Of a DNA stretch of 64,000 bases, positions 374 to 63,057 are shown one piece after another. Source of the stretch: Adineta vaga (Eukaryota; Animalia; Rotifera). Position numbers and translations under genes: made by a program. The stretch covers positions 372,001 through 436,000 of the forward strand of contig CP075494.1 of the NCBI GenBank assembly GCA_021613535.1, in the 5' to 3' direction. The notes below the pieces were generated by a model. That model was not told the origin of the DNA. It did not search any database and was given only the letters and a program-made list of their open reading frames with translations. The stretch's first letter is position 1, and each line of letters opens with the position of its first letter.

Positions 374-423
374 TAGGGTGGGTGTGGGTGTTTCTTCTTC
401 CTTCACCGTCACCCACCCACAAG
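374..423. repeat. Head-to-head telomere-repeat element (HTE)
   Basis: tagggtgggtgtgggtg-tttcttcttcctt-caccgtcacccacccacaag. Confidence 0.8.
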
Positions 424-789
424 AAAAAACGAAAACATCGAGAAGTGCGCCGATGAGATAATGACAAGCTCTTTTAAAGTTTTTAAAAAATGCAAAGGAC
501 AGTCGAGCAGAATGAACTCTCCGCAAAAAAGAAATTTCATAAAATTTTATTGACTTAAAAATATTGTAAATAAATTATTTGTTTTCAGTTGAAAATTCGG
601 CAAAATCAGTGGTCTTCGTCTTCCATATTTAGACAAGATCTAGGTTGTTATTTTTTCTCTGTTTCAGCGTCTTAAAAAAAACTATACGTTGTTTTCTTAT
701 TTATTAAAAACTTTAGAAAAGACGCAAAAACGGATCTGTCTCAGTAAGAAGCACATGTCTTCGCGTATTATCAGTCACAATTTTTTTTC

Positions 790-1041
790 TTGCAGAAAAA
801 TACAAGTACGTCTTTTATTTTTTTAGTCTCGATTGTAGTCGCGCTCGTTGCTGCAAGTTATTTCTTTATTATCATCCATGAGATATTTATTATCTACAAA
901 AGAGTACAACATCGTAATGGAAATGAACCAAACTATTGTGACCGTCTTCTCTACAACAGTGCATTTGCCTTACTAATTCTTTCATATATAATGATTATAG
1001 TTGTACCTATTTGGGCCTATTTGATAGAGAAAACACGTTGA
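790..1041 (+). pseudogene. Two-TM membrane protein exon or fragment
   Basis: 83-aa ORF with two hydrophobic helices, preceded by an acceptor-like ttcttgcag; no clear start. Confidence 0.3.
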
Positions 1042-1447
1042 AAGCAAAGTGAATCGGCTTAGTCAAGCAATGATCAGAAATTTTAAATTATTGTTGCTGT
1101 GATAAGAAGTTTTTTTATATTGTTAACACATTCAATACGACGGATCCCACCCGTGGGACCGGCTATATTTTAGAAAGAAAATGAGTAGAAAAGCACTTTC
1201 TTTTTCTTTTTTTCTTCGGTCAGAAGATTATCTGTAGTATATCATATATTTTGTCGAGTCTTTCTTCAAACATTTATTATATAGAATGGGACTCATATCG
1301 CCATGTGTCTGAATAGTGCATCATTTAATGTGGCTACTCATTCTTTTGGTAGATGTAACCTGATGAAATTGTTAAGACCAATAAAAACTGAAGAATTCCC
1401 CACGGCTTCTTAAAATTTTAGGACGATACAATTACACGTCTATTTGT

Positions 1448-1523
1448 ATCTTGAGGATAGAGGGTGTGGGTGTCGGTGAAGAGATACTAACATCCTCACC
1501 CTCAATCCCACTCATACGCTCAA
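1448..1523. repeat. HTE with ATCTTGAG...CTCAA ends
   Basis: atcttgaggatagagggtgtgggtgtcggtg-aagagatactaa-catcctcaccctcaatcccactcatacgctcaa. Confidence 0.85.
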
Positions 1524-1674
1524 AAAAACGATAAAAAATAAGAAAACCCTTTTTTCCTAAACATAGTTGAATTCGTAATGATTAACCAAATTCGTATTCA
1601 TAATATTACTCAAGATTTGTAGATTTACTCTTAGCAATAAAACACTCTCGAATTCAGAAATTGTGGGTGGGTGG

Positions 1675-2427
1675 TAGGGATGTGCGGTGTCGAATAACGG
1701 AGCACTGACAAACACCGCCGATAAGTTCACTGTTCACTGATAGTTCACCGTCAGTATTTTACTGATCCTCGATGAACACTGACACCGATAGCACTGGAAC
1801 ACCAATGCTTTTTTTTATTACTGACCACTGATGCACTGATACTCTCGGTGCACTGATGATGTCAGCGGCGCTGATTTCACTGACACATCTATGTTAATGT
1901 TTATGTTTATTGCTTGTAGTTCCTAGGCGGACCATCATGACATCTTTAATACGAAATATCGAAATATGTTGAATAGTTTTATCGGCTGAGAGACTAGATC
2001 AGCTGGATTTTACTACTTCCTATGTCTACATTTCGTTAATTATAATCGCCGAAAGACGGGTTTCTTTTGTTTAGTTCACGACTGTCTTTATCTCCGTATA
2101 CATTAAGTTATGTTTCTTTTACCGAAGATGTAATGATTATTTTTATAAAACTCTTCAATGATATTTTTTTTCGTTGTGTCTCTAAAATAAAACGTTGATT
2201 CATCTCTTGAAAACCATATTCATCTGACCTGTGAACGTGTTCTATCGATTCTAACCACTCCTTACTATAAAATGTACAATCAAATCAATGATAAAATGTC
2301 AGCAAAATCAGTGTCCCTGGCATTGTCAGCGAAGTCACTGGCACTGGCATCGTCAGTGCACCGAGAGAGAGTATCAGTGTAACAGTTTCAGTTTCTTCAG
2401 TATTGCCACTGACGCCGCACATCTCTA
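1675..2427. mobile_element. Non-autonomous hAT-type element inserted inside an HTE
   Basis: TIRs tagggatgtgcggtgtc / gacgccgcacatctcta; perfect 8-bp TSD gtgggtgg (1667-1674, 2428-2435); many subterminal CACTGA/TCAGTG motifs. Confidence 0.85.
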
Positions 2428-3029
2428 GTGGGTGGGTGTGGATGTGAAGAAGATATATCCACACCCACCCTATCGTTTTTTAACAACGTCCATTTCTCAT
2501 GGGACAAAGTGTTCATGTGCAACATCTTCAACATGTATTGAACATGTGTATGTTAATAATACAATTGTATCACTTCTTCGATTGACTCTTTCTTGCCTTT
2601 TATAATGAAACATGTCTTCAGTTGATCAATTTTCGTAATTTATCTTCAATTGTTCCACTTGATACTTCACAACTAAGTGAATATTATCCTAATAGTACAG
2701 TAGATCCAATAGTCATAGGTGAATTCGTTGAAAAATGGATTATGAATATATCGTAATCAGATTATTTCTCAACATGTGCTCCTTGAGCATGTACTTATTC
2801 AATATCAAAACGAAAAAATGTTCTCAATGTAATTACTATTCTGTTGGCTCTTTATGGAGAATTGACATTAATTCTTCGTATAATTGTTCCTTGGATTGTG
2901 ACTTGGTCAGAGAAAATATTCGACTTTATTTGTCAACATCATAATAATCGTGTTATTCTATTTTCTTAACTCATATGTCAATTTGTTTCTCATCCTCGCA
3001 TAATTGATGTGCTCTGGAAAGAAACGAAG

Positions 3030-5500: not shown

Positions 5501-5632
5501 GAAACGAAGGGCCGATATAAAAGACGGGCATACTTGTTTAAATAAACAAATTGAAACACACATACAAAGTTTGACGTTACAATATCCAGAAAGTTTCGTC
5601 TTTGAAAAATACTTCTTCTTTTGTTTGATAAT

Positions 5633-6036
5633 AATACAAGTAACGCTCGCCGTGCCGACTCACTCAACCCTCGACTGCGGAGAACAAGTATTTTTAGTTA
5701 GACCCAATAGTGAAACGAATTGATCCGCCAACTTACCATACGAGAAAACCGCTTAAATGTTACTGCTGCAATGTGTAGTAACCTTCGAAAACAAAATAAT
5801 AACTTTTTCTATAAAACGATCTCACCCAACATCCCAACCGACAGTGTCACCCAACACCCCCACCCACCCACACCCTCAACTCACTCTCACTAGACCTAGC
5901 CCCATCGTACTATCAGTTTTCAACGTTTAGGATCATTTTTTTAAAAAAAATGTTTTTTTGACCTTTGACCCTGACACAAACAGACAGACAAATTATTTTT
6001 TTTCATATGACCCTCCTTACAGTCGAGGGAACTTAA
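5633..6036 (+). mobile_element. Helentron/HINE-like non-autonomous element
   Basis: Subterminal inverted repeat ccctcgactg (about 5668) / cagtcgaggg (about 6020) and a (caga)n microsatellite. Related partial copies in reverse orientation at about 9100-9195 and 57705-57755. Contains a C-rich HTE half (5848-5890). Confidence 0.55.
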
Positions 6037-6968: not shown

Positions 6969-7654
6969 TTTTTTATTAGTAAAGTGAAAACAATAGGTCT
7001 GCTTTTCAATATTGTCTGTGTTAAATAGAAAGAAATCTTTGATTATCTAATGTATACACAAAAAAGATAAGAAATATTGTTTTTCTTTTTCCTTTACTTA
7101 AGACGTGAAGATCTCACATTTTCCTATTTTTTCGTAAATGTGCATCGTTTACACTGCAATATCATATTGAGTCACATTTATATTAGTAAAAATGACTAAA
7201 ATAAATAGAGTGATAACTCGATGAAATTTGGTCAAGATAAGTTAATACTATGAAAACTCAAGCATTTATTTATTTACTGCATGTGTTATTTGGTCATCCT
7301 AAATTTGATTTCTAAAGAAAAAATGAATTGAGTTTCTGAATATAAATATTTCGATTGGGCTAAATTTCTTAAAGTTATGATGAATGAATAAAGTGAGGCA
7401 TAGGATTTCATTGATTAAATCCTTTAGATTCTTTCGTTGTTGTTCATCATCAACTCTTCGAAAAACTCTGTTCTTAGCTTTTGTTCTGGCTATTTATCCG
7501 TTTCTTTCTGTAAAACAACAAGGTGATATTTGTCATTTTTATTTTTCTCCTTTAAGGCACATGTTATGTTTTGTTTGCATTGGAATGGGGATTTTGTTGG
7601 CGTTGCTCTTGATGAAAAGTCTTTCCAAAATCGTTGTGCTGCGTACTGGGAACT

Positions 7655-7711
7655 GGTGTAGGTGTGGGCGCGAAAGAAGGAGAGATACACCCACACCACA
7701 CCCACACCTAG
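7655..7711. repeat. HTE about 10 bp upstream of the F-box ATG
   Basis: ggtgtaggtgtgggcgcg-aaagaaggagagata-cacccacaccacacccacacctag. Confidence 0.85.
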
Positions 7712-7720
7712 CATACGTAG

Positions 7721-9015: not shown

Positions 9016-9284
9016 AAATTCCATCTGTTCGACGTATTTTCGTTAGAATACTTTTTTTTCTTAATTAATAAACAATTGATTCAACTGAATAATCAAATTT
9101 TGATTCCTTCGACTGAAAGAAGCGTGTATTACGAAGAAAAAGTTACGAAAAAAATGGAAAATTCGTTTGTATGTATGTCTGTCGCAGGTCAACACTTCTA
9201 TGACTTCTACTACACTATGGGAATGCTCTTGGGTCCTTATATACTATACTAGGCGGGTACCCATGGGTCCTCATGTACTGCATA

Positions 9285-9347
9285 GTGGGTGTGGGTTAAG
9301 GGCATAGTCTCATGTACACTCACGCCCACCCTTCACCTACCCCTCAA
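9285..9347. repeat. HTE
   Basis: gtgggtgtgggttaagggc...cactcacgcccacccttcacctacccctcaa. Confidence 0.75.
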
Positions 9348-12133: not shown

Positions 12134-12203
12134 ATCTTGAGGATGGGTGTGAGCATCGGTGAGGGTCTCTTCTACATTACCATACACGCCCACACCCACC
12201 CTT
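12134..12203. repeat. HTE inside phase-1 intron 12105-12343
   Basis: atcttgaggatgggtgtgagcatcggtgaggg...catacacgcccacacccaccctt. Confidence 0.8.
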
Positions 12204-14155
12204 CCATTGACAGAAATGGTTCTTTCGAACAAATTTTGATGTTAAAATACTAATATTGTTTCTAACTGCTAAATGTTTATTCAGAACAAAAGATTAGTAT
12301 AAAACGAAAACTTAAATCGTATAAGTGAATTAATGATATCTACCTAAGGATGAAACGGTTGTAGTACTTGATGTTATAATTGAACATGATGTAAGTCTAG
12401 GATCACTTGATATTATCCATTCGGCACCATTCCATTGATGCCACTAATGGATATCTTTTTGCCGATAAACAATTTTATTCCAATATAACAACATTTCATA
12501 TTTATCGTTGTCATCGCGGTTACCATTACGATACACATGACCACTCTGCCAGATCGTCCAATTGTTGCCTTGGGTATCATAAATACTGTGATACTCATTG
12601 TTAGGTTTAACAGTTTCATTATGACGTGATTCTATATTTCATAAACTTACAATATATGTGAAAAAAAACTAACGTTAAAAATGATTTTTACATATTTTCC
12701 CTGTCTATGTGACATTATTATAATAATACCGATTTATAGTTACTCTGATTTTGTAAAAGTTCTTTATTGTTACAACTCGAAATAGTTTGAATATAATATT
12801 TATATAACTAACTCGTTCTATCTACAAAACTAAGTAATAACATAACATAAATTCATTTTATTATTATGACATATTTGAATGAAATAATCAAAAGTTTATT
12901 TCAAATAATGTTTCCCAATATTCTTCTTTTCTTATTTTAAGAAAAACAAAATCTTACCTGAAACAATTACAGAAATACATATACATAATATAATCGATAT
13001 GATTATATTTTTCTCGAACATTTTATACTAAAATTCAAGAATTGAATTCATAGAAGAAAATAATAAAATATATTTCATACCATATTCTAACAATGTTATT
13101 AAAGAAAATCTCCAACTGTTTCTAATTGAAATATTATTATTATATAGTCACTATTACAGCTTTTTTATTTCTTTGCTGACATAAAAAAAGTAATGTGAGA
13201 CTGTCAATAACTTCTCATATTTTTCTATTTAACGATAGTTGTTATAACACAAAATTGATATGGTAGTTAATACAAAATCAAAAAAGACTTGATTTTGTTT
13301 TGTTCGCTCACATTATTTACAAGTAAAACAAAAATATAATTATTTTTCTTTTTTGTCTAGAAAATATTATATTAAATCAAGTTAAAATCAATCATATTCA
13401 TCTACTCTGAAGATCAATTCTTTCTCGTAATTGATATTTTTCTTTCATATATTCTCTTCCAACCATGTTAGTAATATCACCCTTGATAATAAATACAAAG
13501 TACTTCAATTTTTAATAGCTTATTTTAAAGATTCATTCATTGTACAAATATGTTGTATTTTTTCGATATTTGTTTACGTAAAGATTTATAATGAATTAAA
13601 TCTTGATAAAATATAATTATTAAAGGAAGTGATTTTAATATTTTTCAAGGATTTTATCGACAAATTTCATACTTTTAGTTACAAATTTTACATTATCATA
13701 TAATGTATTTTTATAGATTTTATTGAGAAAATTGAAGAGATTTTGTTCACTAATTTAAAGTTTATAATATTTTTATCAGTTAGAATCATTATTGATGTGT
13801 AACATTTTCGATAAGAAAATAAATATTATTTATACATTATAATACGTCATTTTACGTTTAATGCACTTTAATATCTCTCTGTACTTTATGATTTATTTTT
13901 CTATAATAATTGATGTTTGTATACACGCAATTATATCATATAGACAATAGAAATAATAAAAAAGAAACGTTCTTTCAGTGTATCATTGTATAATCAACAT
14001 ATAAATAGAAAGTGGGTGTATCATCATGCGTAAGTTATGACGTATTTATTCATGAGTGTATATAATAACAATTATTCATACGATTTGATCACAAATATCT
14101 TAAACATTGTTACCTACTAGAGTATTATTCAAATTAATATTCTAAAATTTATCTA

Positions 14156-14539
14156 ATGATGATGTCTTATACAATTAATCTTATGATATTATTATTTATG
14201 GTGTTTATGAGTGTTGTTTTATCAAATCCTATTACTAATTATACTCAAAGTAATAGAGGATGTGGACCTTTAGGAATAAATATCGATCCAATTCTTCAAA
14301 AAGAAGGTGTAGGAGGACTGACTCCTTGTTGTGTTCAACATGATGCATGTTATTCAACTTGTGGTACAACTCGAACTATGTGTAATGATGATTTTCGTAA
14401 TTGTACAACAAGTTTTTGTGCAACTCAACAGTCCTCATCATCATCTAAATGTCTTAAATATGCATCTGCTTTATACACTATCACATCAGTTCTGGGTATA
14501 CCATCATTCGAAATTAGTCAAGCAGTGGCATGTAATTAA
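14156..14539 (+). CDS. Secreted phospholipase A2 (group XII-like), intronless
   Basis: Signal peptide; GCG..LTPCCVQHDACYSTCG..CNDDFRNC with the CCxxHDxCY catalytic motif. Confidence 0.88.
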   Translation: MMMSYTINLMILLFMVFMSVVLSNPITNYTQSNRGCGPLGINIDPILQKEGVGGLTPCCVQHDACYSTCGTTRTMCNDDFRNCTTSFCATQQSSSSSKCLKYASALYTITSVLGIPSFEISQAVACN

Positions 14540-14687
14540 ACTTCTATAATAAATTAAATAGTATATTTTACTGTTTTAACTTGTCATTTCTAAATAAATG
14601 GGCTTTACATTCTAGAAAATATCGTTTTGACAATGAATATACGATTAAATGAATAATAAAAATAAGAAGTGTGGCAGTAATTAGTGA

Positions 14688-14748
14688 TGTGGGTGGGTGT
14701 GGGTGTGAATTCACACGAGGAAGATGCACACCCACACACACCCAAGAT
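14688..14748. repeat. HTE
   Basis: tgtgggtgggtgtgggtgtg-aattcacacgaggaagatg-cacacccacacacacccaagat. Confidence 0.85.
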
Positions 14749-14858
14749 GTTATAACAACTTGAAAAATGCTTTTTCGTTCATATAGGAACTTAAAAGCAA
14801 AAATCAACCAGAACAAACTCCAAAACGTTCAAAAAAAGCCCTTTACACAAATTATACT

Positions 14859-15350
14859 TTGTCTATGACGGTTGCTACTGTGACATGTGTATTAGAAGTA
14901 TTCTCAAGCATTACAGACTATCTGAGTTGGTTCGATCAAAACAAAAATAAATGTATCTTTATCATCACATCGAACACCATGGCAAGATTAGCTGTACCAT
15001 TGATTCTCGATAACTTTCGAGAAATATTCACTGATTTATTGACATATGGATTTCATTTGTCAATTTGTGTGTTTCGTGAAAATGATGGAGAGCAACTAGA
15101 TTGGGCATTTGATTATAGAAATAATATTCAAGTATTTGATTTTGATGAAGATCTGTTCGTTCGTTTGATACGTGATATTGCTGATTATCATGTTGCTGTT
15201 GGTAAACATATCCTGAAAGTTCTCTGTCACATATTGCAGCTGTTCATCGTCGATTTTCTTGGGCAGAAAAACTATATGGTCGGTATTGCGACATAGAAGG
15301 TGTCTTTTTGAAGGAAAAATTCGATGAAATCAATGTACTTCTTGGAAAAT
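14859..15350 (+). pseudogene. Fragment resembling the N-terminal domain of bdelloid ART/TPR-type proteins
   Basis: DYLSW..KCIFIITSNTMARLAVPLI..ICVF..WAFDY..IQVFD pattern; frameshifted end; lies between two HTEs. Confidence 0.4.
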
Positions 15351-15662
15351 GAAACATAAGTAATGCAGCTAAACACTAACTCTGCCAAAAGCAAAATGTG
15401 AAACGCAAAATAGTAAATGTGCAATAAGTTAAGGGTAATTGAAGACTATGCCTTTGAGACACTATTAACATTTAACATATTATTGTATTATTGTAATATT
15501 TTCTCTTCTCATCTGATTGACAACGATTTGCGTTCACATCAGATCCTGTGCTTTCGTTTCATTTTTCAACAGTTATGAGATTGTCTATCTCTTCAATGTA
15601 GTCCTGATTGATTTGAATATTGAATTTTAAGATATTCTTCACTTTTTCGAAATAATCTGTTG

Positions 15663-15723
15663 CTTGAGGGTAGGTGTGAGTGTCGCTGAGAATGAGGATA
15701 TGAAGTTATGGCGCACATCCACT
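15663..15723. repeat. HTE (C arm eroded)
   Basis: cttgagggtaggtgtgagtgtcgctgag...cacatccact. Confidence 0.6.
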
Positions 15724-16491
15724 ATGATTTTCAATAAAGAGAAAATTCCCAACACCTGTCATTCCCGGACTGATGCACGAAATCGACAAAAAATAATTTT
15801 CATTTCGAACATCCGGACACGTTACTATAGGTATTCGGAATGGGTGGTACGAAACGTAGTTAACCCGAATTTGGCGCTTGACTTTGAGTACTTTGTGTTT
15901 TCAAATTATTGTCGATAGGTCTTGAATAGTATTCGTAAATCTTCTAAATGATAATATCGTCTAATAAAATATATAGTTCAAATTGATAATGGAATAGAAG
16001 TGTAGATAAGAGAATTTATCGAAATATTAAATACGGTTTTATACGAATTTGATATCATCTATTGCTAAAAGTTATAGTTCTTTTTCTCTTCCTTATTGCT
16101 CAGATAGGCCCTGTTTGTATATGCTTCCTTGACCTGTTCTTTTGCTCTTATATAAACTGTTAACAAATATGAAAACTCTGGTATTTTTCTTTCCATTTTT
16201 TTTTCTTCTCTTGATGAAAAAAATGACTTTGAGAATTGTTACGCATCGTCATAGTAGACGTTTCTCTTTTTCTCGTCAGTGAAGATATATAAATGATGGA
16301 ATATGAAAATGAGAATTTTCTCCATTCTTTTCTTTGTTCAACTTGACGATAACGATGGTAACAGAAGAAAAAGAAAATATATTTATCTGTAGTATTTTTT
16401 CCTCCTCATTCTTAGTCGAGAAACCAGTAAATTTAGTCGACATTTATTTCTTTTTTTGATTTTTACGTTTAAAAGAAATACTGGTTTTGTA

Positions 16492-16967
16492 ATGAGCCAT
16501 CCACACGGTACATTAGAAGTTACTATTGTCGAAGGTCGTCATCTCAAAGATGAAGATGTTGTGGGTAAAAATGATGCTTATGTTGAAGTTTATGTAGACA
16601 AAGATTATAAACAACGAACAACTACTGTTCACAATTCGAATAATCCAACATGGAATGAAAAATTTATCTTGTAAGTTTAGCTTTTTATTAGATTTTATTT
16701 AATATTTTCATTTAAGTAATTTACGAAAACATGACGATGATTTACATTTACATGTATATGATGATGATGTAGTTGGTCGAGATTCTGTTGGTTCAGCAAA
16801 GATTGATTTAAAAAAACATGTCTTTAGTAAAGGACGTTATGATCAATGGGTTAAACTACCAGCTATGTTAGGTCTTCGTTCTAAAGGTGAAATTCATATT
16901 ATTATTGAACATCATGTAAGAAACCTTGTTTTTTTCTCAAATATTGATATTTATATTTTAGCCATGA
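16492..16967 (+). CDS. Single C2-domain protein (3 exons: 16492-16670, 16717-16915, 16962-16967)
   Basis: GTLEVTIVEGRHLKDEDVVGKNDAYVEV..NPTWNEKF..HVYDDDVVGRDSVGSA; Ca-binding Asp positions present; GT-AG introns keep frame. Confidence 0.9.
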
Positions 16968-17106
16968 TACAAATTTATACTTCGAACTTTATTTATCCAT
17001 TATTAGTTTTCAAGTAGTACACAACTAGTATTTCTAAATTCAATTTCACAATAAAAATCATGCTTTTTGTAATTTATTTCAAACCTAATTGTTATACTTC
17101 ATAAAT

Positions 17107-21747: not shown

Positions 21748-21788
21748 CACCTACACCCACATTCAGACACCCTCACCCTCACCCTCTC
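21748..21788. repeat. C-rich HTE half (smaller halves at 21385-21400 and 21545-21557)
   Basis: cacctacacccacattcagacaccctcaccctcaccctctc. Confidence 0.6.
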
Positions 21789-21891
21789 TTTATGAATACA
21801 GGCGGAATTTGATATAAAAGACTTAATAAGATGAACAATTTCATTATTTGTTTTGGTATTGCCAGCACAATCATAAAATTACATGGGAAAG

Positions 21892-28270: not shown

Positions 28271-28311
28271 TTTAAGGAATGATGATGATATTCTTTTTAA
28301 ATATTGTCACA

Positions 28312-34511: not shown

Positions 34512-34570
34512 CCTGAGGGTGTAGGTGTTGGAGATACTCTGTCCTTCATCCACACTCACACTCTCAAGAT
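34512..34570. repeat. HTE with CTCAAGAT end
   Basis: cctgagggtgtaggtgttggag-atactctgtcctt-catccacactcacactctcaagat. Confidence 0.88.
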
Positions 34571-42389: not shown

Positions 42390-42560
42390 AACAATCAAAT
42401 TTTGTTAGATAGGATGTGAATACAATAGAGTATGAATACAATGTCGAATGTTTATTTTGAAACGCGTAGCATTTGATTTAAACCGAATTAGCTGCATAGT
42501 TGATGGATTTCGATCTTTTTTATTGACGTGTATACTAAATGATGGTTATTTGATAGAGAA

Positions 42561-42597
42561 AGGGTGTGGGTGTAGCTTCAAATCGATACCTTCACCT
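42561..42597. repeat. Short HTE
   Basis: agggtgtgggtg-tagcttcaaatcga-taccttcacct. Confidence 0.6.
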
Positions 42598-43013
42598 GAA
42601 GTTCGTATTCGTAGAAGCTTTTGAGAATGTAGATATTTAATTCTCATATCTAGAAAATGACATATGTAAATAGATGTGCGCTTGCATCAATTACGGTTAA
42701 CGAAGAAAGCAGTGCCACATATCTTATAAATTGGAGATCCTGAATATGATCACAGCGATGCATATCCTAGCATCTTTTGTATGTTTAGAAGCCTTTCCAA
42801 CATCTTCGATCTCCAGAATATGTGACATCACTCAGTACTTATTTATTAGAAGAAATAATAATCGGAAGTTTATAAAATAGTGAAGTAGCTGTGAGTTTTA
42901 CTCAGGCACAGTAGTATTTAACATTTCCAGCCAGAACCGTGTGTGTTGGTTCAAATAAAGAATCGATACTCAAATCCTCAACTTCCAAATGAAATTATGT
43001 TTTCTTTTATTTT

Positions 43014-46000: not shown

Positions 46001-48700
46001 TTCCTTCATCATCAATTTTATTTGATGGCATGCCGAGTGTTATCAATGTCTATATAAATAATAAAAGATAAAGAAAACAAAAGCAAACAATGATCGACAC
46101 TTTGTTAATTTTCAAAAGATCAGCCATGTGTTTAGCTCCTTCGTTTCTGATATAATTGTCATCGAGATTCAATGTAGTAAGTGTCTGTGCAAAAGATTTA
46201 TAGAACTAAAGGAAAACAACACGAAATTGAATATCGTCACCATATTCTCTCGTAAAGCGTTAGCAAGATATTTTGCTCCTTCAGCTGTAATCCCATTACG
46301 TCTTAATTCGAGGTGTTTTAGTGTCTGAATGGAAAAAAAAATGTTAAATTAAATATTGAAAACGATTAGAGAATATTAATAACTGTGTTATGTTGCAGAG
46401 CATTAGCTATAATCTTGGCTCCCGTATCGTGAAAATAAGCCGACAATGAAATTTTTGTTAGAGACTAAAAATAAAAGAGAGAAACAAATAAAAATTGATA
46501 ATCATTTAAAACCAAGACTACAGGATCATTTTTCATTTGTCTTGAAGTTTCAATAGCTTTATAATAATCTCTTCCATTCCATTCTAAAGATATTTTAACG
46601 CCAGTCTGCGTATAGAAACGAAAAGATGAATATAATTTTGTCAAAAAACGACGAAATGATATACCATATCTTGTTGTAAATCATCAAATAAATATTGTAG
46701 TTCTGGTACAGTAATTGAATTACAGTTCAGATTGACCGTCGTAACAGTCTATTTACAGATGGTAAAATAATTACCTAATACAGTAGATTATACTACAAAT
46801 TACCGGCTTATTTTTCAATGTAATGGCAAGATCTCTCGCACCATCGTTTCCGATTTTGTTATTTGAAAGATTAATTCTTTCAAGAATCTAAATATAGAAA
46901 ATCAAGTTCAATGTTACACAAAGCAAAGTCAATACAATTACATTATTATTCTGTAATGTCTCAGATAAGGATTTGACTCCATCGTTTGTAATCGAGTTTT
47001 GATGAAGATTCAATTCTTTCAATGTCTAAATAAGAATTAATAAAATTAATTCAAAGAAAACAAAATGATATGTTCAATATCTATAAACAAGAAACGATAA
47101 AGAAAAAGATGTTGAATACCTTATTTATTTTCAAAAGATGAGCTATATGTTTAGCTCCTTCATCTCCAATATCATTGTCACTAAGGTTCAATGTAGTGAG
47201 TGTCTATTTATGTCAGAAGTAGCATACATTTAAACTATCATGAATAAATGAGATTTACCGTATTATTTACTAATGCTTCAACAAGATATTGTGTACCAAG
47301 TGCTCTAATATAATTGTCGTGTAAATCCAGTTCGATGATTGTCTGTTTTTAAAAAGAATAAATATATTTTATATAGTATAAAGCAGATTAACTATATGAA
47401 GTACTTGATTATTTTGTAATGCATGAGCGAGAAATCGCATATGTGAAGCTTTTAAATGTTTTCTACTAAGATCTAGTATGGTGAGTTTCTATATAATAGA
47501 GATGAAATGATTCAGATTAGGACAAAGATATATAATACTTACAACATGTATAGTGTTAAGATTAAGTTCGTCTTTTGCCAGATCATTTATATAATAAATA
47601 TTGTCTTTTGATGAAATCCAACATCGTATGTACCGCCTACCCCAGGTGAATTGATGAATAGGTTTAATAATTGGTATTGTATAAAGTGATATTGTTTGAA
47701 ATCCAAATAAATCGAATACTTGATCACAAATAATAAACCAACGTTTTTCATTGAGCCAAAATGGATGTCGAAATGGTTCTCTTATTGTATCAGGATGAGG
47801 CATATCATTCTCGGAGAATTTACAAGAAATAAAAAATTGAAATTTCTTAAGAAAATCTAATTCATTTCGAATAAAGTTTTCCCATTCATAAATATCATTC
47901 ATAGATTTGAAAATATTATCGGAATAAACTAAGTCGAGTTCACAAAGTTTTGATGTTTTTAAAAGTAATGATCTAAGATGTTCTATTGATAGAGAACAAC
48001 ATGTAATGCTTAGATGTGTTAATTGTGAATTAAATGAGAAATTTAACCAAGGTAAATACAAAGATTTCTCGTCAATATCGATATCTACTACGTGAAATGA
48101 CTCTAAACATGATAATTGATGAAGAAGATATGAATATTCCTTGTAGAAACAACGATTTATTGATAAAAATTTTAATTTACATTGATCGGGCCACGACATT
48201 TCTTCAGCTTTATAAACTAAACTTGTCCAACACAATTTTTGAAGTTTTAATTTTTCAACACATGATAAGACAATAGTAAATGTTGTGCTCTTTATGTCAT
48301 CACTTGAATCAATTGTAAGTGAAACTAATTCAATGTTATTTAACCATATAAATACAGATTGTATACTTGTATTCTTAATATATTCAAGTGTCAAATGACG
48401 AAGTCGTTTGCATTGAAGAATATCACAAATAAGAGCAGGTTCTAAATATTCCAAAGGATTCAACCAGGAACAATTTATTGATACTACACGATCAAATAAA
48501 ACGTGCGAAGGAATGCTTCGTCCTTTTTTTTCATATTGATGAAGATTAACTTTAACTTGAAGTCGATCATAAGATTTTGCAATAGAATGAAGTCTCTTGC
48601 AAACACAAGAAATCGTACATAGAATCGTTTTAATATCACAGAAATCAAAAATACGATGAAATACTTCCACAGGAAGATTGAGTAAAAATGATTGTTCCAT
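43014..48700 (-). CDS. F-box + ribonuclease-inhibitor-like LRR protein, about 30 exons, mostly one 84-nt LRR per exon
   Basis: MEQSFLLNLPVEVFHRIFDF F-box in a 1.16-kb exon, then regular exons TLxxLxLxxNxIxxxGAxxLAxALxxNx separated by 50-95 nt introns; full frame integrity not checked. Confidence 0.85.
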
Positions 48701-49244: not shown

Positions 49245-49286
49245 TTGATGTTGGTGTCGGTGTCAGTGTAAAGCCACACCCTCAAG
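49245..49286. repeat. HTE directly fused to an FG-GAP fragment
   Basis: ttgatgttggtgtcggtgtcagtgtaaagccacaccctcaag. Confidence 0.7.
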
Positions 49287-49504
49287 TTATATGCGATTTA
49301 AATGGTGATAATTATTTCGATATTATTATTGGAACACCTTCATCAGGTACGATCTATAATCTTTTAGGAAATGGACATGAAACTTTTCAAACACAAACAA
49401 TTTATACGAATCATACAAATGTTTTCATTAATGATACTTGTTATGATATAATTAGTATGAATTTTGTGTCTAATTATATTTATATTCTTTTCAATTCATG
49501 TTAA
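49287..49504 (+). pseudogene. C-terminal FG-GAP/VCBS repeat fragment
   Basis: ICDLNGDNYFDIIIG..LLGNGHETFQTQ..YDII..IYILFNSC*; no N-terminus, begins at the repeat. Confidence 0.7.
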
Positions 49505-49752
49505 TCTTCGACAAATTAAACTAGCATAAACATTTCATCAATATAATTTTCTTTTTACATTCAATCAAAAAAGTGATAGTTATTGTAATTAAAACATTTC
49601 TTTTCATCAAAAGATATTGCTTGAAATTCTCTACAAAGTCATTCAAATTGACTCTGATAAAGATGTTTGTTGTTATTTAACTTTCTAATTTTTTTCATCT
49701 AACAGTCGTTCTACTGGGAAATAGATTTACATTCACGTATATTATATTTATT

Positions 49753-49790
49753 TTGAGGGTGTGGGTGAAGATGTTCATTCCATTACCATA
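49753..49790. repeat. HTE G arm
   Basis: ttgagggtgtgggtgaagatgttcattcc. Confidence 0.7.
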
Positions 49791-50001
49791 TTTATCGAAT
49801 CCATAATTCATATGAATAACATCGAGAGAATGCTTTATATATGTAATTAGAAAGATCATATCAAGTGCTATTAATTTTTTTGAAAATCTGATATGAATCG
49901 TTTTCTTTTCCTATTTCACGAATATTATTTGAAGATTAAGAAATGTAAAATAACCTGTGTTTCTTTTCAGTTTCTTTTTCTTGATGATATTCAAATCAAG
50001 A

Positions 50002-50090
50002 TTCTTGAGGGTGTGCGTATGGGTAAGGATTTACGTTTAATCCAAACTCCCTCAGCCACAGCCACACCCACCCACACCCACACCCTCAGA
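50002..50090. repeat. HTE at the NHL gene 3' end
   Basis: ttcttgagggtgtgcgtatgggta-aggatttacgttta-atcc...cacacccacccacacccacaccctcaga. Confidence 0.9.
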
Positions 50091-52572
50091 CAAGAGTGGA
50101 GAGAGTTCTGTTTTTGTTCATAGTTAGTTTGTTGACCGGACAGGATGTTCTGTCTAGTAAAAATTTTTGTACTCGATGTGTCAAAGATTCTACCACGTAC
50201 AAATTCCAGTTTTGATCGAAAGCCATGTCTTCCGGACGCTGCAATTTGTTCGTTTGACCGTCTAAGATGACTTGCTTTCCGAGCGCATTGGGTAACCATC
50301 TTGTAACTCGAAGCTCATAAGGTTCTACCACATAGACAACCTTCGTATATGTCTCGACGAAAATTGACTGCGGATTTAATAGTTGGTGTATACCACTGCC
50401 TGATTTATCACTTCCTGCAACTGTAATTAACTGTTGAGTGTCTGGCATCCATTTAACAACTTTGCTATGATGGGTACATACATAAACAGCACCTAATTCA
50501 TTGACATCGTCTACAAAGAGACCCACAGGATTTTTCAGTACGCCTATCCCACCAAATAATATTATTCCCGTAGTGGATTTCTTTAACGATTTGACTATTC
50601 TTTGATTACCCATGTCTACCACATAAACTGATTCCTCTCGATCGACATAAACATCTTTTGGAGAATTTAACTGGTTCAAAGCAGCACCGTATCGACCGTT
50701 ACCAGCTACCACTTCGACTGAACCTCCTACTGCGCTTCTTTTCTGAACTATATGACTGCTCGATACAGTAAAATATAAATTATCGTATCTATCAATAAAT
50801 AATTGTCCAGCTTTCACTGATTTGACCAAAGTGACAATTTCTTGACTATTTCTTGAATACTTTTGTATACGACTATAAGAAGGATCCGAGACGTACAGAT
50901 TTTGTTGACTATCAAAAGCTATTGATACTGGTTTATAAAGCTGATTCATTGCGCCACCACCGCCATTACCACCGGCTACAACAATTCCATTTGGAAACCA
51001 TCGAGCAGTCTCACATAGAACTATCGCTGATTAAAAGAAACATGTACGTAGAAGACGCATCTTACAATGGAAGGTTGCGAACTGTTGAGCAATAAGCTTG
51101 ATTTTCTTCAGGTGAAATAATCTTTCTCATCGAGAAACTAATACACTCACATTATGAGTTACTGATGGGGGACCGTAACAGAGATATTCCAATTTAAGAC
51201 ATTTTCTGCACATGTATTGTGCTGGTCATTCAGCACTTTAACAGAACTTAAGTGTCTGTTTTCGTCATGGCTGAATAGAGCTCATCGAGTTACATAGGAA
51301 AAAAGTGTATTCCGAAAGTTTATAAGCCATTTCACGTAAAATTTCAAGATATCTTTGTTTTCCAATATAAGGTGAGATAGACCCAAAATTTTAATTTTTC
51401 ACAAAGTTGTTTTTAAACTTTTGATACACACTTTTTCTTATGTAACTCGATGAGCTCTATTCAGCCATGACGAAAACAGACACTTAAGTTCTGTTAAAGT
51501 GCTGAATGATCAGCACAATACATGTGCAGAAAATGTCTTAAATTGGAATATCTCTGTTACGGTCCCCCATCAGTAACTCATAATGTGAGTGTATTAGTTT
51601 CTCGACGAGAGAGATTGTTTCACCTGAACAAGGTCAAACTTATTGCTCAACAGTTCGCGACCTTCCATTGTTAGTGACAAAGAATACTTTTTAGAAATCG
51701 TTAAGGGTGACTGTGAGTGTGGGTCTGTATGTATTGTTAATTCATATTCACGCCCATTCTCGTCTTTACTCTTCCTTTTAGGAATGCAACAAGTCCAAAG
51801 CCTTGGACCTGGCATGTAAGATGTGATACTCATACGATTTCGATTCGGCTAGCTTTGGTATGTAAGGTTTGAATTTGATTTGGATTTGTTTTAAGACAGA
51901 AATAATATAAATAGTTTGCGATTCGACAGTTGCAACCGAAACTGGAACTTGTTTATGTGGGTTTGGTTTAGAGAACACATCCAAAACCCAAATCAAAACC
52001 AGTATCCAAATCCTAAAGCTATTTGTCAGAAAGCTGACGGACATTCTAGGCCAAAGAGGAGAGCGAAAGAAAGTTTCTACTTGAAACTTGACTTACACTC
52101 TTCTGTCGTGGTCGTCGTCGTTGTGCCGCTTGGTATTGATGGAGACGTTGTCGTTAAAATCGGAACAGATATGGTTGAACCTACAGGCAAACCTGTAGTT
52201 CCCTCAGCTGATATAGTTGTTGAAACTATAACCATTGTAGTGGTAGTTAACGAGATTATGCACTCACCTGTGGGTTTCGTAAAAGTATAGATTTCTTTAC
52301 CTTTTTTCACATAGATAACCACAGCTACGACAATACAAATAACTACAATTATGCATAAAACCAATAGCAACCATCGAATTCGACGGCACTGTACTGAACA
52401 AGTGCAATGCCAAAATGAACAACATGTACAACCATGGCACAGACTCAATCCTTCATTATTATTGATGGTAGATTTTGTAGAGTGTTGACTGCCTCGTTTA
52501 AAATTGGTATTTGTTTTAACCTCAGCTAGCTCGAATTGCTGAATGTTTTCAGGATTGACTGAGCATCGTAAC
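50086..52572 (-). CDS. Type II membrane NHL-repeat protein with Thr-rich stalk (5' exons uncertain)
   Basis: Cys-rich/TM/Thr exon ending at 52097; phase-1 intron 52096-51027; NHL exon SIVLCETARWFPNGIVVAGGNG.. in frame with ORF 50086-50949. Confidence 0.82.
51065..51670. mobile_element. Fold-back MITE with about 245-bp TIRs, in the NHL intron
   Basis: caatggaaggttgcgaactgttgagcaataag.. / ..cttattgctcaacagttcgcgaccttccattg; TTA on both flanks (PIF/Harbinger-like TSD; Tc1-like TA not excluded). Confidence 0.88.
51705..52014. repeat. Two degenerate HTEs (51705-51761, 51956-52014) in the NHL intron
   Basis: gggtgactgtgagtgtggg..cacgcccattctc; tgtgggtttggtttag..catccaaaacccaaatc. Confidence 0.55.
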
Positions 52573-55249
52573 TGTAGAAAAAGAGATCAATAAGAGTGTC
52601 CAGCGCAATTGAATAAATCTAATAACTAATCCGACCATCCGATAGGAATCCGGATGATGCAACTACTTATGGATCTTGAGAATCGAGTTTTTGTTGGATC
52701 TGGCTAGATTCGGTGTCAAAGTCAACGACCTGAGAGGTTAAACGGGTCTTCGAATGTGTCTCATAGCTAGGTATGTGACGAATCGAACAAATAGGCGTGC
52801 TCGGTACGAACAAAATCGTGAGGATGATCATTCGTTCCAAACATACACACGCTAGGACCAAAGCTGGGCAAAATACTTAAAATACTTGCACTCAAGCATC
52901 AGGCACTCTACAGTATGGAGTCAGGACAAAGGTGCCGATATTCCTTTTTTTAAACCCTTGGGCACGCATAATCCAGAAAACATCTATGTGAATAACTTTC
53001 GATTGGATTCAATATTCTTTTTCCATCCATTGGTCACAGGATTGGGTTGAAAAGCTCGAATCTTATCCATCGAGCAGGCCCATAGGTTAATCCTGCCTAT
53101 GGGGTTACTTTGAATTCTCTGTTGTATGCTGATACAAGTAAAAGTATACGCACGACTGTGCAAGAATTCACGATAATGTATTAGATTGCTCTATAGGGTT
53201 GAAAATAAGAAATATATATTTTTATGTAAATTAAAAGAAAACATTCATAGTTTATAGGTGTCACACAAAACACAATACAATATAAATGTAGGCGACAGTA
53301 TAAAGGAATATATACAACATTAGTTACGCTACTATTCATCTTGATGCCATTAACTCAAGGCAGTGCGAAGAAGTCAGAGCAGGAGAAGGGACATTTGCAA
53401 AAAGGAAAACATGTGAAAACGTCTTTTTAACTACACAGGATTTCTCATAAATAAGAAAAAGGTGCCCCTAATTTTTCAAAAACTCGAGATCCGCACCCGC
53501 GTCGCTACTCTGGTGGGGAAAACTCATCAATAATTGTTTCCAAGTTCTTAGAACGCTTGTGGAAGTTTCCTAGACAACTGGAGCAAAACTTTCAAAAGTA
53601 GAAGAGATATCCTCCCTCAATCCCTCTCGCTCGCGCCGCCATTGCAGAGAAAACAAATTGGCCCGCATCACTAACCTGTTTTAGCTCTTTTAAAAAGAGA
53701 AAAATGTGTTTGTAAATATATGATTCTAACAAAGCCGCAGTAGTATATATTATATAGATATATCACAAGCAAAAGAAATGAAAGAATTTAAGGTTCGACA
53801 ACAAAAGACGCTATAAGTGAAATTATAAAACCAACTTAAACATTGGACTAAAAAGAAATGAAATTAGCTTTGTATGTATCACGATAAAGTATTCGACCAA
53901 GCATAATAAATACGGAAGCACTGACAAATCGTATATAGCATAGTGTAATGACACATCTATTGAACGAACTTGTCTCTAATTATTTTCTTAAATATATAAT
54001 TAATTTAATGGGTTCATCATAGGCTCACTCATGGATTATCCAGTCGAACTTCTCTCCAGACATGGGTGAGTGGATCCGGGTTGACCCCCGACCGATTGAA
54101 TCGAAGAGGTGCCCACACCAACCCAACCTGTCTGACACCTCTGAATCAGATATCTCCAACAGACACAGACTTGTGTTATCGCGTAACAACTCGACAAAGT
54201 GTGCACTTTTAACACGTAAAAGAGGATTTTATTTTGAAAAAGCAAGCTTACAGGTATCATTATGTTCAAACTCACTTTCACGAAAAAGAACCTTTTCGAA
54301 CCTATAAATGGTGTATATTATAACATATAAAAACACGTTTTTTTTTATCAATTCCTTCGCCCTAGGCATTTTGTTGTTCTTCGACTCCCGAAATATTTTA
54401 GTTTCTGTGTCGCAACTAATTTAATGGCGCATCTCAGAGATACTGCGTTGAGGTTTACTCCGCAACATCTCTCGGTCAAAATTTTCAAATCACATCGGCA
54501 TCCTTCTACACAGATTACTGAGATTCTGTTTACCTTGTAGAGAAGCATAGATTTGACTCGAGAAATTGATCGATAAACCATATTCGTTCTCGCTCTTTTA
54601 AAGAAAAGATGTTGTATTAAGACAGAGTCAGATGCGTATATGTAATTTTCATTGTACTCGTACTCATATTCGAGAAATTCTGTACTTGCCCATATCTAGC
54701 TAAGATCTGCTATGATCAGCTAGAACGTTGTTCGATTCGCCACATACTTAATCATGATCAACAATAGAAATCATGGACTGTTCTCAGTCACACTACTAAT
54801 GTTATCGAACTAACCTGATGGTTTCTGATTGAGTTCGATTTCTGCAAGTTGCCACAATAAACACATTCAACACGTGCACCAGCAGATCGCGGTCGTGGCA
54901 CAGCTAGAACAAAAACCATGTGAATCATATTTTGATGCTTTTACCCACAAATACAATAAACTTACTATTTCTAATAGATTCTCGAGGAGCACTTGGCCGT
55001 ATACTCGCGCTCATTTCACATTCTATTTCGCTTTTTTATCATATTTATGTGCATGAAATTTGTCGAAAGTTTCTTATTTACCTTGGAAAAAATATTCTTC
55101 TTTATTTCTTTAGTCATTATTTTGTTATTCGCGATGATATTGCTGACTTTAAAAAAAGTGAGAAGATAACTTAGGTGTTGTGAAACATTGATGAGTAATG
55201 AGAAAACTATTGGATTAAAAACACAAAAGAACGTAACAAATACTCGGAC

Positions 55250-55307
55250 AGGGGTGGGTGTGGATGGGTTGAGAGTATAGCATGACCCACACCCACACCT
55301 TCAAGAT
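55250..55307. repeat. HTE
   Basis: aggggtgggtgtggatgggtt-gagagtatagcat-gacccacacccacaccttcaagat. Confidence 0.88.
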
Positions 55308-61104: not shown

Positions 61105-61183
61105 GTGGGTGAGTGTTGTGCAGTGTTATTTTACTCCCTTACTCTCGCCTTCACCCACACCCTCACCCACACCCACACCCTTA
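61105..61183. repeat. HTE directly fused to a gene fragment
   Basis: gtgggtgagtgttgtg...ttcacccacaccctcacccacacccacacccttaa. Confidence 0.85.
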
Positions 61184-61464
61184 ATTTCCAGACAAATACA
61201 TATATCGGTGATATTATTGATGAACTCTTTGTTGAAGAATGGAAAGTGAATATCAACTATTCAATATTCTATCAACCATGTTCTCCAACATACTGCTCAT
61301 ATATAATTAGCAAATCAAACACTTTTCTATATATTCTAACACAAATTTTAGCTTTTTATGGTGGACTTACCGTCAGTTTGCAATTCATTGTGCCATACAT
61401 AATTCAATTGGCGTTCAAAATAAAAACTTATTTTACCAGAGTTACAACTAATCCTTCTGCTTAA
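61184..61464 (+). pseudogene. C-terminal fragment of a large membrane-protein family
   Basis: IGDIIDELFVEEWKVNINYSIFYQPCSPTYCSY..YGGLTVSLQFIVP; the upstream part of the ORF is translated repeat (THTLTHTH). Confidence 0.65.
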
Positions 61465-61736
61465 TTAAATATCATTACTCTCTCTCTCTCTATTTATTCA
61501 TTAAAAGTGAATAAATCACGCAAGAAAAATAATTTGCAAGTTTTTTGTTTTCTTTACTGTGATGTGGATCATCGCTCTTCTAATTCATATATCTTAAAGA
61601 TGTGAATGTGAATGATGTGACGAGAAGACTCACAAAACTTATACTAAGAGCAAGGTTTTGGTCGGGTTGTGCACCAATTAAAATAATATTTGATCAATTC
61701 ATTCATCTACAAACTTGAACGTTGATGGTGGTTATA

Positions 61737-61850
61737 AGGATGTGGGTGAGTGAATGTTGCCTCTTAACATCATCACTCTCAACTTTGCATCCACAAGTTG
61801 ATATCTATTATTTACATTATACAACCTTTCAATGATGAAAGGGTGTGCGT
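61737..61850. repeat. Degenerate HTE plus short G arm
   Basis: aaggatgtgggtgagtg..catcactctcaactttgcatccacaag; aagggtgtgcgt. Confidence 0.55.
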
Positions 61851-61930
61851 CGATACTGAAAAATTGTCTGTTCTTAATTCTTATTTAATTCTAACATAGA
61901 AAAACAGTTTTTATTAAATAGCTATTAATA

Positions 61931-62935
61931 CTATAGTAGTGAGTATGACTGAACTTTTTCTAACTCTACTACAAAAGCGAATGATTGGGTATATGTATCG
62001 TGAGTTGGATTTAGTTCGATGTTAGTGCTTGAGCCGAGTGGTATAAGTCGCAAGTTCGAACCGGCTAAAAATTCGAATAAAGCCTTAATTTCATTTTTTT
62101 CATAACCTGGATAGTTGAACAACTCATCAAATACCAAAATTGATCCTGAAACTAAACGACTTCCAAGAAGGAATAAAACATCTCGTGCACCATCGTAAAT
62201 ATCACAATCAATGTGAACGAATGACACCGGAGTATGACATTGATATTCACGATCAATTAAACGAAGTTGAGTAGGTAATGTGTCGATAAATAAACCTTTC
62301 ACTAAAACAACATTTGATGGAACTGAAACAACGGATCCATTAGGTATACTAAACGATCCAGCGCCATAACCAGGTCTCCAGTTCGTCGGTAATCCACTAA
62401 AAGTATCAAACCCATAAACTGGCTGACTGTTATCCCCACAAAACACTCTCCTCCAATTAGCGATACTAGTTAAAGTAGCACCACGAAATACTCCAAATTC
62501 CATCCAAAGACCATTACAAGAGGGTCTCACTATATCTTTAAGTGGAGGATTGTGAAAAAGGATTTGAATAGAATGTGTCCCTGGAGTAAGTCGACGTGAC
62601 ATTAAAGCTGTACGAGTATTTGTAATAAATTCACCTAAGGTTGAGTGGTTTTGCGATATGTATATGATTCTTGAAGCATCACGTTCACTTACATATGCAC
62701 TTCTATTATTCATTGTTGATAGAATTATTTCTTTGAATTGATCACGTTTGAATGAACCACTATTAGATGGATGGCATAGAACTTCAGACGATGATATTTG
62801 AATCATAGAATAACCCATTGTTGTGTTCAGTATAGTATTGCTTTGTATACAGATACTACGCCGTATTATGAGATATATAATGATGGCGAGTAAAAAATAT
62901 AATAGAAGCTGTATGTTTCTTTTAGTTGTGATCAT
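61931..62935 (-). CDS. TylF/MycF/NovP-related class I SAM-dependent O-methyltransferase with N-terminal signal anchor, intronless
   Basis: MEFGVFRG, VYGFDTFSGLP, LVKGLFIDTLP, SFVHIDCDIYDG and GSILVFDELFNYPG..E motifs. Confidence 0.88.
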   Translation of the reverse strand: MITTKRNIQLLLYFLLAIIIYLIIRRSICIQSNTILNTTMGYSMIQISSSEVLCHPSNSGSFKRDQFKEIILSTMNNRSAYVSERDASRIIYISQNHSTLGEFITNTRTALMSRRLTPGTHSIQILFHNPPLKDIVRPSCNGLWMEFGVFRGATLTSIANWRRVFCGDNSQPVYGFDTFSGLPTNWRPGYGAGSFSIPNGSVVSVPSNVVLVKGLFIDTLPTQLRLIDREYQCHTPVSFVHIDCDIYDGARDVLFLLGSRLVSGSILVFDELFNYPGYEKNEIKALFEFLAGSNLRLIPLGSSTNIELNPTHDTYTQSFAFVVELEKVQSYSLL

Positions 62936-62964
62936 CTAAACAGTATTCTAATCGGTATTTTACA

Positions 62965-63057
62965 AGGGAGTGGGCGTGTGTGTGTGTGTGTGTGAACAAG
63001 ATTATAAGATAAGTAGACGGATAAAAGGAATATTATCACCCACTGACATCCACCGAG
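62965..63057. repeat. Degenerate HTE with (GT)n expansion
   Basis: agggagtgggcgtgtgtg...tcacccactgacatccaccgag. Confidence 0.55.

Follow-up and report, generated by a model that had tools for sequence, protein, structure and literature searches.

The stretch of DNA studied here (hereafter the window) covers 64 kb of chromosome 5 of the bdelloid rotifer Adineta vaga, 0.37-0.44 Mb from the chromosome end, and has a G+C content of 32.5%. Its open reading frames (ORFs) include F-box, NHL, EGF/LDLa, GPCR-like, FLYWCH, MLKL_N, 2OG oxygenase and TylF-like methyltransferase genes, a content that is typical of bdelloid subtelomeres. Bdelloids survive genome shattering, and their foreign genes, which to our knowledge are more numerous than in any other animal, are concentrated in the subtelomeres. 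All ends of the six A. vaga chromosomes carry (TGTGGG)n (PMC8494291). Interstitial telomeric repeats are already known from bdelloid subtelomeres, where they serve as a marker (PMC7943196, PMC8494291), as are chains of Athena/Terminon elements (PMC6431247). Here we describe about 30 short elements in the window, each composed of a G-rich telomeric arm, a core of 10-25 nt and a C-rich arm. Judged by sequence comparison, they mark the points at which stretches of unrelated DNA have been joined and are not simple insertions into collinear DNA.

The telomere-type 12-mer TGTGGGTGTGGG (at most one mismatch) occurs 29 times in the window against 0.05 expected, and the boundary 12-mer ATCTTGAGGGTG occurs eight times against 0.26 expected. 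An arm caller, in which a clean pair is a G arm followed by a C arm within 60 nt, found 30 element clusters with ten clean G-arm/C-arm pairs and no C-then-G pair. This agrees with the initial annotation, made from the letters of the window, which had counted some 30 copies; by our own reading about 22-24 of the 29 coordinates it listed are members. An independent 200-kb region of chromosome 1 gave 34 G-then-C pairs versus two C-then-G pairs. In the complete genome (100.8 Mb in six contigs) the exact pattern of a G arm, 5-35 nt and a C arm has 386 matches per strand versus two for the reversed arrangement, which bears out the claim that the G arm always comes first. The 18-mer ATCTTGAGGGTGTGGGTG (at most one mismatch) is found 985 times genome-wide, mostly near chromosome ends, versus none in the reversed control. 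The exact matches listed for chromosome 1 number 67, of which 60 lie within 0.7 Mb of its start or 6 Mb of its end. Extrapolation from these approximately 985 full-boundary arms indicates that a genome probably contains thousands of elements, at a density in the subtelomeres of one per 2-3 kb.

Boundary, arms and cores

Unique DNA passes into an arm by way of a fixed boundary, which reads (C)C-ATCTTGA-GGGTGT in the A. vaga genome and ACT-ATCTTGA in wild bdelloid metagenome contigs; the latter are rotifer-like, low in G+C and were sampled from moss and soil. The bases preceding ATCTTGA were tabulated by means of one pattern with 11 free positions. In A. vaga, position -1 is occupied by C in 53 of 100 cases among the matches listed (hand count) and in 26 of 45 cases in a second set, with -2 often being C too, while the wild contigs have T at -1 in 34 of 61 cases. 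Such a difference by lineage is consistent with each lineage having a master template of its own from which the copies are made. No conservation was found beyond approximately 3 nt upstream of ATCTTGA, and the DNA outside the boundary is unique in every copy. The boundary is graded: among 147 arms, GGGTG is preceded by the full ATCTTGA in 21, by at least TTGA in 43 and by at least TGA in 56, and completeness is alike on G and C arms. The outer ends originally proposed, ATCTTGAG..CTCAAGAT, are real, yet they are graded and longer than claimed.

The first repeat of an arm is always the variant TGAGGG, followed by TGTGGG. Arms measure from 12 to about 80 nt, and the lengths of the two arms of one element are weakly correlated (r=0.46). 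Arm similarity is 0.52 within elements versus 0.53 between elements (P=0.80), and private variants are not shared. Arms sharing an element resemble each other no more closely than arms taken from separate elements, so they look independently made.

The spacer had been regarded as non-conserved, which is wrong: the cores belong to a few recurring families, most with defined ends and found in either orientation. Family A reads TTAAGAGTATAGTCTG, family B TTAGATAGATGTARTAC, family C AAAGAAGAGGAGATA and family D AAAGAGAAGA; family B alone has 105 copies (at most one mismatch) versus none in the control. Some young complete copies fold into near-perfect hairpins, as at locus L017 (-59 kcal/mol, z = -13), and complete copies of this type are 75 nt long, have both boundaries present and form a 31-bp hairpin. 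Two copies of one unusual core lie 5.4 kb apart and their homology is limited to the element. None of five complete copies examined by eye has a target duplication, and in 68 of 69 elements the flanks are neither direct nor inverted repeats. With miniature inverted-repeat transposable elements (MITEs) the elements have in common the inverted-repeat ends and a conserved multi-copy interior, and they lack the target duplication and the sharp constant ends. With telomere fusions they share head-to-head arrays in which the G strand comes first, whereas their interior and exterior are not those of an untemplated fusion, given the conserved cores and the fixed ATCTTGA boundary. They are also interstitial telomeric sequences in the plain sense that telomeric repeats occupy a non-terminal site.

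Some observations on the wild contigs stand apart. At one locus (L062 minus strand, L128) the two flanks of the element themselves form an inverted repeat, ATGGTTACCAACTGA .. TCAGTTGGTTACCAT, the arrangement expected when capped sister chromatids fuse. Three contigs (L060, L093 and L101) end in long G-strand arrays that start as unique DNA|ATCTTGAGGG and may be true healed chromosome ends. The arrays of L058 and L060 consist mostly of TGAGGG, which shows that the dominant repeat varies between wild species.

Elements and repeats along the window

The first hairpin element, at 374-421, has a G arm, a reversed C-type core and a C arm, and the second, at 1448-1507, has a left boundary of the ATCTTGAG type. 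Between 1662 and 2470 lies a single element, with its G arm at 1662-1676 and 2428-2447 followed by the core and a C arm up to 2470. It is split by a hAT-like MITE at 1677-2427, with termini TAGGGATG..CATCTCTA and an 8-bp target duplication, GTGGGTGG. The coordinate list of the initial annotation needs correction here, since 1663 and 2428 belong to this one element; its entry at 5848 is no member at all and those at 10987, 51956 and 54063 are weak or decayed. A second copy of the hAT-like MITE (L025, C5:272.6-273.2k) has its own 8-bp target duplication, TGTGCGTG, and over both copies the termini are TAGGGATG..CATC(T/C)CTA. The two copies are both embedded in G-rich, telomere-like sequence, which may reflect a target preference. 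The non-member is a C-rich tract at 5851-5881 inside a MITE family of about 400 bp (here at approximately 5620-6033, elsewhere L026-L029), which has inverted ends CCCTCGACTGTGGAG, a degenerate C-rich telomere-like tract inside and at least five copies on five chromosomes.

The element at 7654-7711 has a C-type core, and the F-box gene begins with its ATG at 7721, 10 nt beyond the arm. An A-type core was recognized by eye in the element at 9283-9345, which failed automatic family typing, and that at 12134-12205 combines a ATCTTGAG-type left boundary with a reversed C-type core. A half element at 21735-21793 consists of a reversed core and C arms without a G arm; at 25023-25134 a G arm and a C arm are separated by a long spacer of about 64 nt; and a solo G arm occupies 26676-26700, where a paralog match (80%) stops exactly. 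The remnant at 33220-33252 has a short G piece, a reversed core and a C arm with the end CTCGAGAT. Further along lie a hairpin element at 34512-34570 with right boundary CTCAAGAT and a G arm with a decayed partner at 42560-42600. Directly beyond the C arm of the element at 49245-49288 comes a fragment with a single FG-GAP repeat, which is closed by a G arm (ATTTTGAGGG) at 49750-49775. The minus-strand NHL ORF at 50086-50949 has as its stop codon the boundary TGA of the element at 50002-50093. The element at 55250-55307 has an A-type core and right boundary CTTCAAGAT, and a decayed G arm with a long C arm is found at 61105-61185. The TylF-like methyltransferase ORF is bracketed by a weak hairpin at 61735-61800, about 130 nt downstream of its stop, and by a decayed G arm plus C arm at 62964-63057, 30 nt upstream of its start.

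That intervals between elements may hold one gene or fragment, as first suggested, is borne out by the compact TylF-like ORF (61931-62935) and the single FG-GAP repeat (49286-49504). Taken together the intervals contain intact genes, truncated genes and small fragments, down to a 116-bp scrap between elements at 33252-33363, and the genes occur in both orientations.

Other residents of the window are foldback or MITE-like repeats at 23947-24200, 28898-29371, 30281-30750 and 51061-51674; the last contains a 243-nt inverted repeat with arms that are 95% complementary. A 473-bp insertion lies within another repeat (28311-29927). On the minus strand at 17368-20028 is an adhesion-GPCR-like gene (EGF plus 7TM) with about 20 paralogs across chromosomes at 66-81% identity, and the ORF at 22464-22931 encodes an MLKL N-terminal domain (pore-forming executioner).

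Junctions with flanking DNA

Junctions were resolved by searching the window against its own genome and aligning the paralogs. At five resolved junctions homology ends exactly at the arm, and the flanks are non-contiguous in 5/5 paralog comparisons, a small sample. Unique DNA joins ATCTTGA-GGGTGT at varying points, in some cases with a possible overlap of 2-3 nt and in others with none.

The first junction, at 14748/14749, is the right edge of the element at 14688-14748, which is flanked on its left by the 3' end of a PLA2 gene. At the junction the C arm plus AAGAT adjoins a 5'-truncated gene copy and reads ..TTATAA|C-ATCTTG, while the paralogs of that copy at C5:368.9k and C6:931k extend upstream into unrelated sequence. 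The same piece, 14749-15665 (paralogs at C6:931.6k, 88%, and C5:369.0k, 96%), ends at the second junction, 15665, with ..GCTT|GAGGGTAGG, in which CTT is common to the boundary motif, and the C6 paralog continues differently past this point. The G arm entered here as CTT|GAGGG spans 15663-15725 and its C arm is decayed. The third junction, C5:369623, lies upstream of the window in the tandem sister of this piece, which is 300 bp shorter and is cut at ..GCAG|GGTGTGGGTGTGGG. The arm that follows (..GCAG|GGTGTGGG) is longer and cleaner than that of its sister and lacks ATCTTGA, and both sisters lead into the same DNA downstream. Since a deletion cannot lengthen an arm, new repeats were added at C5:369623. 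The two sisters belong to a tandem segmental duplication, L022 (C5:369001-371083) versus 14747-17104 of the window, approximately 17.7 kb apart at 89-96% identity, whose copies were cut and re-capped at different points beside the same arm.

The fourth junction concerns the tail of the PLA2 gene: 192 bp at 14442-14633 are duplicated (95%) on the plus strand at 33496-33687, where the left end of the fragment is cut and telomere-capped. The cut end is directly fused to four clean CCCACA units, (CCCACA)4, on the outside of the older decayed C arm of the element at 33361-33495. The fifth is on chromosome 1, where the F-box gene at 47087-48216 has a paralog that is cut at TATAAA|ATCTTGAGGG. In addition there are two tandem restarts, in which an arm is followed by C|ATCTTGA (window 30171-30201) or by ACT|ATCTTGA (L065). 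The former lies in the element at 30171-30287, where an old decayed G arm (30171-30189) precedes a fresh C|ATCTTGAGGG and the restarted element has a 47-nt G arm, a core and a C arm. The multi-copy foldback repeat that follows from 30281 begins exactly at the edge of this element (30190-30287).

Over the window, homology endpoints within 15 nt of an element edge number 8 versus 2.8 expected (P=0.013). The initial view of the elements as joints is borne out by this enrichment and by the paralog homology that stops at the arms. Its concern that the junctions might be assembly artefacts is answered by contigs of two independent studies, which span 49249-49285, 49752-49770 and 50005-50092; since independent contigs cross them, these junctions are not artefacts of assembly. 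Presence/absence polymorphism was not seen in reads over one 6-kb stretch, and an exact-protein look-up of the TylF-like ORF, meant for allelic comparison, returned no record. Apparent read joints at 49771-50064 were considered as deletions and rejected as cross-matches of other copies. The idea that the elements are introners (GT..AG ends, both orientations) was likewise dropped, since an RNA-like contig runs unspliced through 50005-50092 with real introns nearby. These are seen in the RNA-like run X7, which within 49909-54903 has minus-strand GT..AG joints at 52226-52300 (75 nt) and 52572-54814 (2243 nt). A minus-strand transcript contig at 49909-51102 places a hairpin in the 3' untranslated region (UTR) of the NHL gene.

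Origin of the elements

We favour, with a probability of roughly 0.55, an origin in which both ends of a break were healed by RNA-templated synthesis, by telomerase or an Athena-type reverse transcriptase (RT), and were then joined head to head. In the mechanism that we infer, a telomerase-type RT (telomerase or the related Athena enzyme) would extend a broken 3' end by copying an RNA with the 3' part 5'-(CCCACA)n-CCCUCAAGAUGG-3'. An end without homology would start at or near the 3' end of the RNA and so acquire (CC)ATCTTGA before the GGGTGT repeats, and an end with a few matching bases would enter the template further in. Repeated copying would give the variable arm lengths. Synthesis running off 10-20 nt beyond the repeat template to a fixed stop, perhaps the 5' end of the RNA, would yield the core, and a template jump onto the G tail that caps the opposite end would produce the C arm and TCAAGAT, the boundary in mirror image. 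Two unrelated pieces of DNA would in this way become linked via G arm, core and C arm, and many such events in the subtelomeres would in time leave a mosaic of complete and truncated genes and of fragments.

In this mechanism TGAGGG would be encoded by the alignment part of the telomerase RNA, and ATCTTGA(GG) by the few bases that adjoin it, which could account for TGAGGG as the first unit and as an occasional variant later. The predicted telomerase RNA would contain 5'-CCCACACCCUCAAGAUGG-3' with the cores just upstream; the template RNA would carry CCCACACCCTCAAGATGG with the reverse complement of a core within about 20 nt before it, and the several core families would stand for several template RNAs or paralogs. 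The sliding entry, the default start at the far end and the restarts from the far end point to template-directed synthesis and not to transposition or site-specific recombination. As was argued from the outset, the fixed boundary also speaks against untemplated healing. Snap-back or palindromic copying was considered separately and rejected, as the arms within an element are not especially alike and the flanks are not mirrored.

Several points weigh against RNA-templated healing of both ends. The template RNA is hypothetical and we know of no rotifer telomerase RNA, and the number of core families requires more than one such RNA or paralog. A core with both ends fixed is also expected of a mobile unit, be it a small retro-copied RNA or a MITE, and neither arm length nor boundary completeness showed any polarity relative to core orientation. 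Some young copies (such as 2428-2470 and L017) fold into such good hairpins that their arms could stem from one hairpin template. The breakpoint enrichment at element edges is only modest, the resolved junctions are only five, with possible overlaps of 0-3 nt, and the comparisons are with paralogs. That a dedicated bdelloid end-joining system exists, in which telomerase or an Athena-type RT copies a short RNA onto both ends of any broken or incoming DNA and the copies are joined, is a tentative and rather doubtful proposal.

The main rival is that the whole hairpin represents one mobile RNA, 5'-CCAUCUUGAGGG(UGUGGG)n-core-(CCCACA)nCCCUCAAGAUGG-3', which an Athena or telomerase RT would copy into breaks in the manner of a short interspersed element (SINE), with the far end closed by ordinary end joining. 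A single template molecule would then be the source of the two arms and the two boundaries, which suits the core families with their defined ends and about 100 near-identical copies, the folding of complete 75-nt copies, the pair of same-core copies whose homology stays within the element, and the lack of target duplications. It is also suited by the presence in the genome of a tRNA-derived SINE with a telomere-complement tail. A single template sits badly with arm lengths that vary widely and correlate weakly within elements, with the lack of private variants shared by the arms of one element, and with the absence of 5'-truncation polarity relative to core orientation. Moreover, the fresh clean repeats without ATCTTGA on the C-arm side are better explained by a second end that was capped separately, and on balance we consider the single hairpin RNA unlikely. 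The SINE itself is about 230 nt long, with an Rfam tRNA match at its head and an (ACACCC)n end (L041:1558-1793, L043:6083-6295 and L047:8571-8790; C1 16.01-16.08 Mb), and has the appearance of a non-autonomous element partnered with a telomere-priming RT. Its (ACACCC)n end indicates that small RNAs are retro-copied at telomere-like ends in this genome.

A non-autonomous DNA transposon of the MITE or foldback type, with telomere-like terminal inverted repeats (TIRs), would also explain inverted ends with a conserved terminal motif, conserved cores, a high copy number and a species-specific terminal base. TIR elements dominate the transposons of A. vaga (PMC8494291), and truncated genes at the edges could be due to later ectopic recombination or aberrant transposition among thousands of copies. 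We judge this distinctly improbable, as the true MITEs of the window do carry clean target duplications and the five complete elements examined do not, the boundary is graded and not sharp, junctions slide along the end sequence, tandem restarts occur, the arm of the sister copy is longer and cleaner than deletion can yield, and no transposase was found nearby in 20 ORFs. Indeed, a comparison of 20 window ORFs with Pfam, the window being the extent of the scan, revealed no recombinase, integrase, transposase or RT, in line with the initial annotation, which had seen no recombinase. That annotation had proposed attC- or RSS-like sites, that is, integron-like site-specific recombination that assembles gene cassettes. 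The gene-sized intervals, some with one compact gene such as the TylF-like ORF between 61735 and 62964, invite this reading, which is left unsupported by the absence of such enzymes among the 20 ORFs. Truncated genes and tiny fragments without cassette regularity, variable junction points and arm lengths, genes in both orientations and the lack of a promoterless ORF array leave it hardly any credence. Hairpins might instead be kept for a function, whatever their origin, as 3'-end or termination signals, insulators or sources of small RNA, given that they are stable, that some lie directly at stop codons (50086) and that one is transcribed within a 3' UTR. Against this, many copies are decayed, copies are also found at the 5' ends of ORFs (7711/7721) and beside gene fragments and transposons, and a truncated ORF would meet a stop in the TGAGGG boundary by chance. 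A primary signal function is not needed to account for the positions, and we hold it to be very improbable.

Among known systems the closest may be the TERC-ITS and short interstitial telomeric tracts of vertebrates, which are put in at breaks, some with template-adjacent TERC sequence (PMC8537989, PMC2246262). Like the elements, they are telomeric repeats at an interstitial site without target duplications; their junctions show small deletions or microhomology, and telomerase places the repeats at double-strand breaks (PMC2246262, PMC8537989). Three of 41 TERC-ITS loci are head-to-head, which has been ascribed to a second enzyme on the other end (PMC8537989). What is the exception in vertebrates is nearly the rule here. 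The bdelloid elements further differ by their short family-specific core and fixed 7-10 nt boundary, and by flanks that are usually unrelated DNA and not a resealed break; an origin from telomerase RNA of the sequence beside the repeats is a prediction. By analogy, we lean slightly towards regarding the elements as a mass-scale relative of TERC-ITS. In neotelomere formation, telomeric repeats are added de novo to non-telomeric broken ends in ciliates, nematodes and yeast, and experimental lines of A. vaga have telomeric repeats and Athena fragments at deletion breakpoints, according to the accessible part of the source (PMC13564844), which does not mention an ATCTTGA start for these lines. Neotelomeres are terminal caps, whereas here two caps face each other within a chromosome with a templated core between them.

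Athena elements and Terminons occupy the same subtelomeric compartment, where host genes are captured between units and RT is primed from exposed 3' ends via RNA tails of (ACACCC)n or (TCACCC)n (PMC6431247, PMC8557442). Terminons measure kilobases, encode an RT and a hammerhead ribozyme, and form head-to-tail chains with a single repeat orientation (PMC6431247, PMC8557442), unlike the elements, which are 45-130 bp long, have no ORF and no hammerhead match, and are head-to-head. Rfam hammerheads were absent from the window, from 150 kb of chromosome 1 and from 19 metagenome loci, as well as from L021, beside a long ATCTTGA-started array, and a gapped pattern of hammerhead core plus core B had 0 matches in the genome. 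Because of the lack of hammerhead matches, an origin of the cores from hammerhead or Athena 3' ends was rejected. Telomere-telomere fusions share the G-then-C geometry of two fused ends, and fragile interstitial tracts are sites of further breakage and rearrangement (PMC11626172), which the re-healed arms suggest here too. Ordinary fusions differ in that they lack a conserved filler and pass from unique DNA to repeats without any fixed sequence in between.

The elements are real, abundant and informative about mechanism. More likely than not they represent, on a mass scale, a variant of neotelomere scarring and of break repair templated by RNA, and an integron-like system is unsupported. In a literature search that fell short of key Athena/Terminon papers we found no description of the head-to-head family with its orientation rule of approximately 190 to 1, nor of the (CC)ATCTTGA start and its species variant, the core families or the junction behaviour, and novelty is accordingly provisional. 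As a sequence-level record of fragment joins, the elements would carry a readable signature of enzyme and template. They provide a search tag for the rotifer telomerase RNA, namely the sequence predicted above with four short upstream cores, and they predict that breakpoint-clipped reads in irradiation or mutation-accumulation data start with ATCTTGA-GGGTGT. They also suggest that telomeric repeat density, which bdelloid papers take as a proxy for subtelomeres, is mostly a count of repair scars. If the dedicated end-joining system exists, the fixed boundary and the cores would spell out the rotifer telomerase RNA around its template, and break repair templated by RNA, a rare curiosity in vertebrates, would turn out to be a major force in shaping a genome. 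The patches would then be the physical mechanism by which bdelloids assemble shattered, duplicated and foreign DNA into subtelomeric gene arrays.

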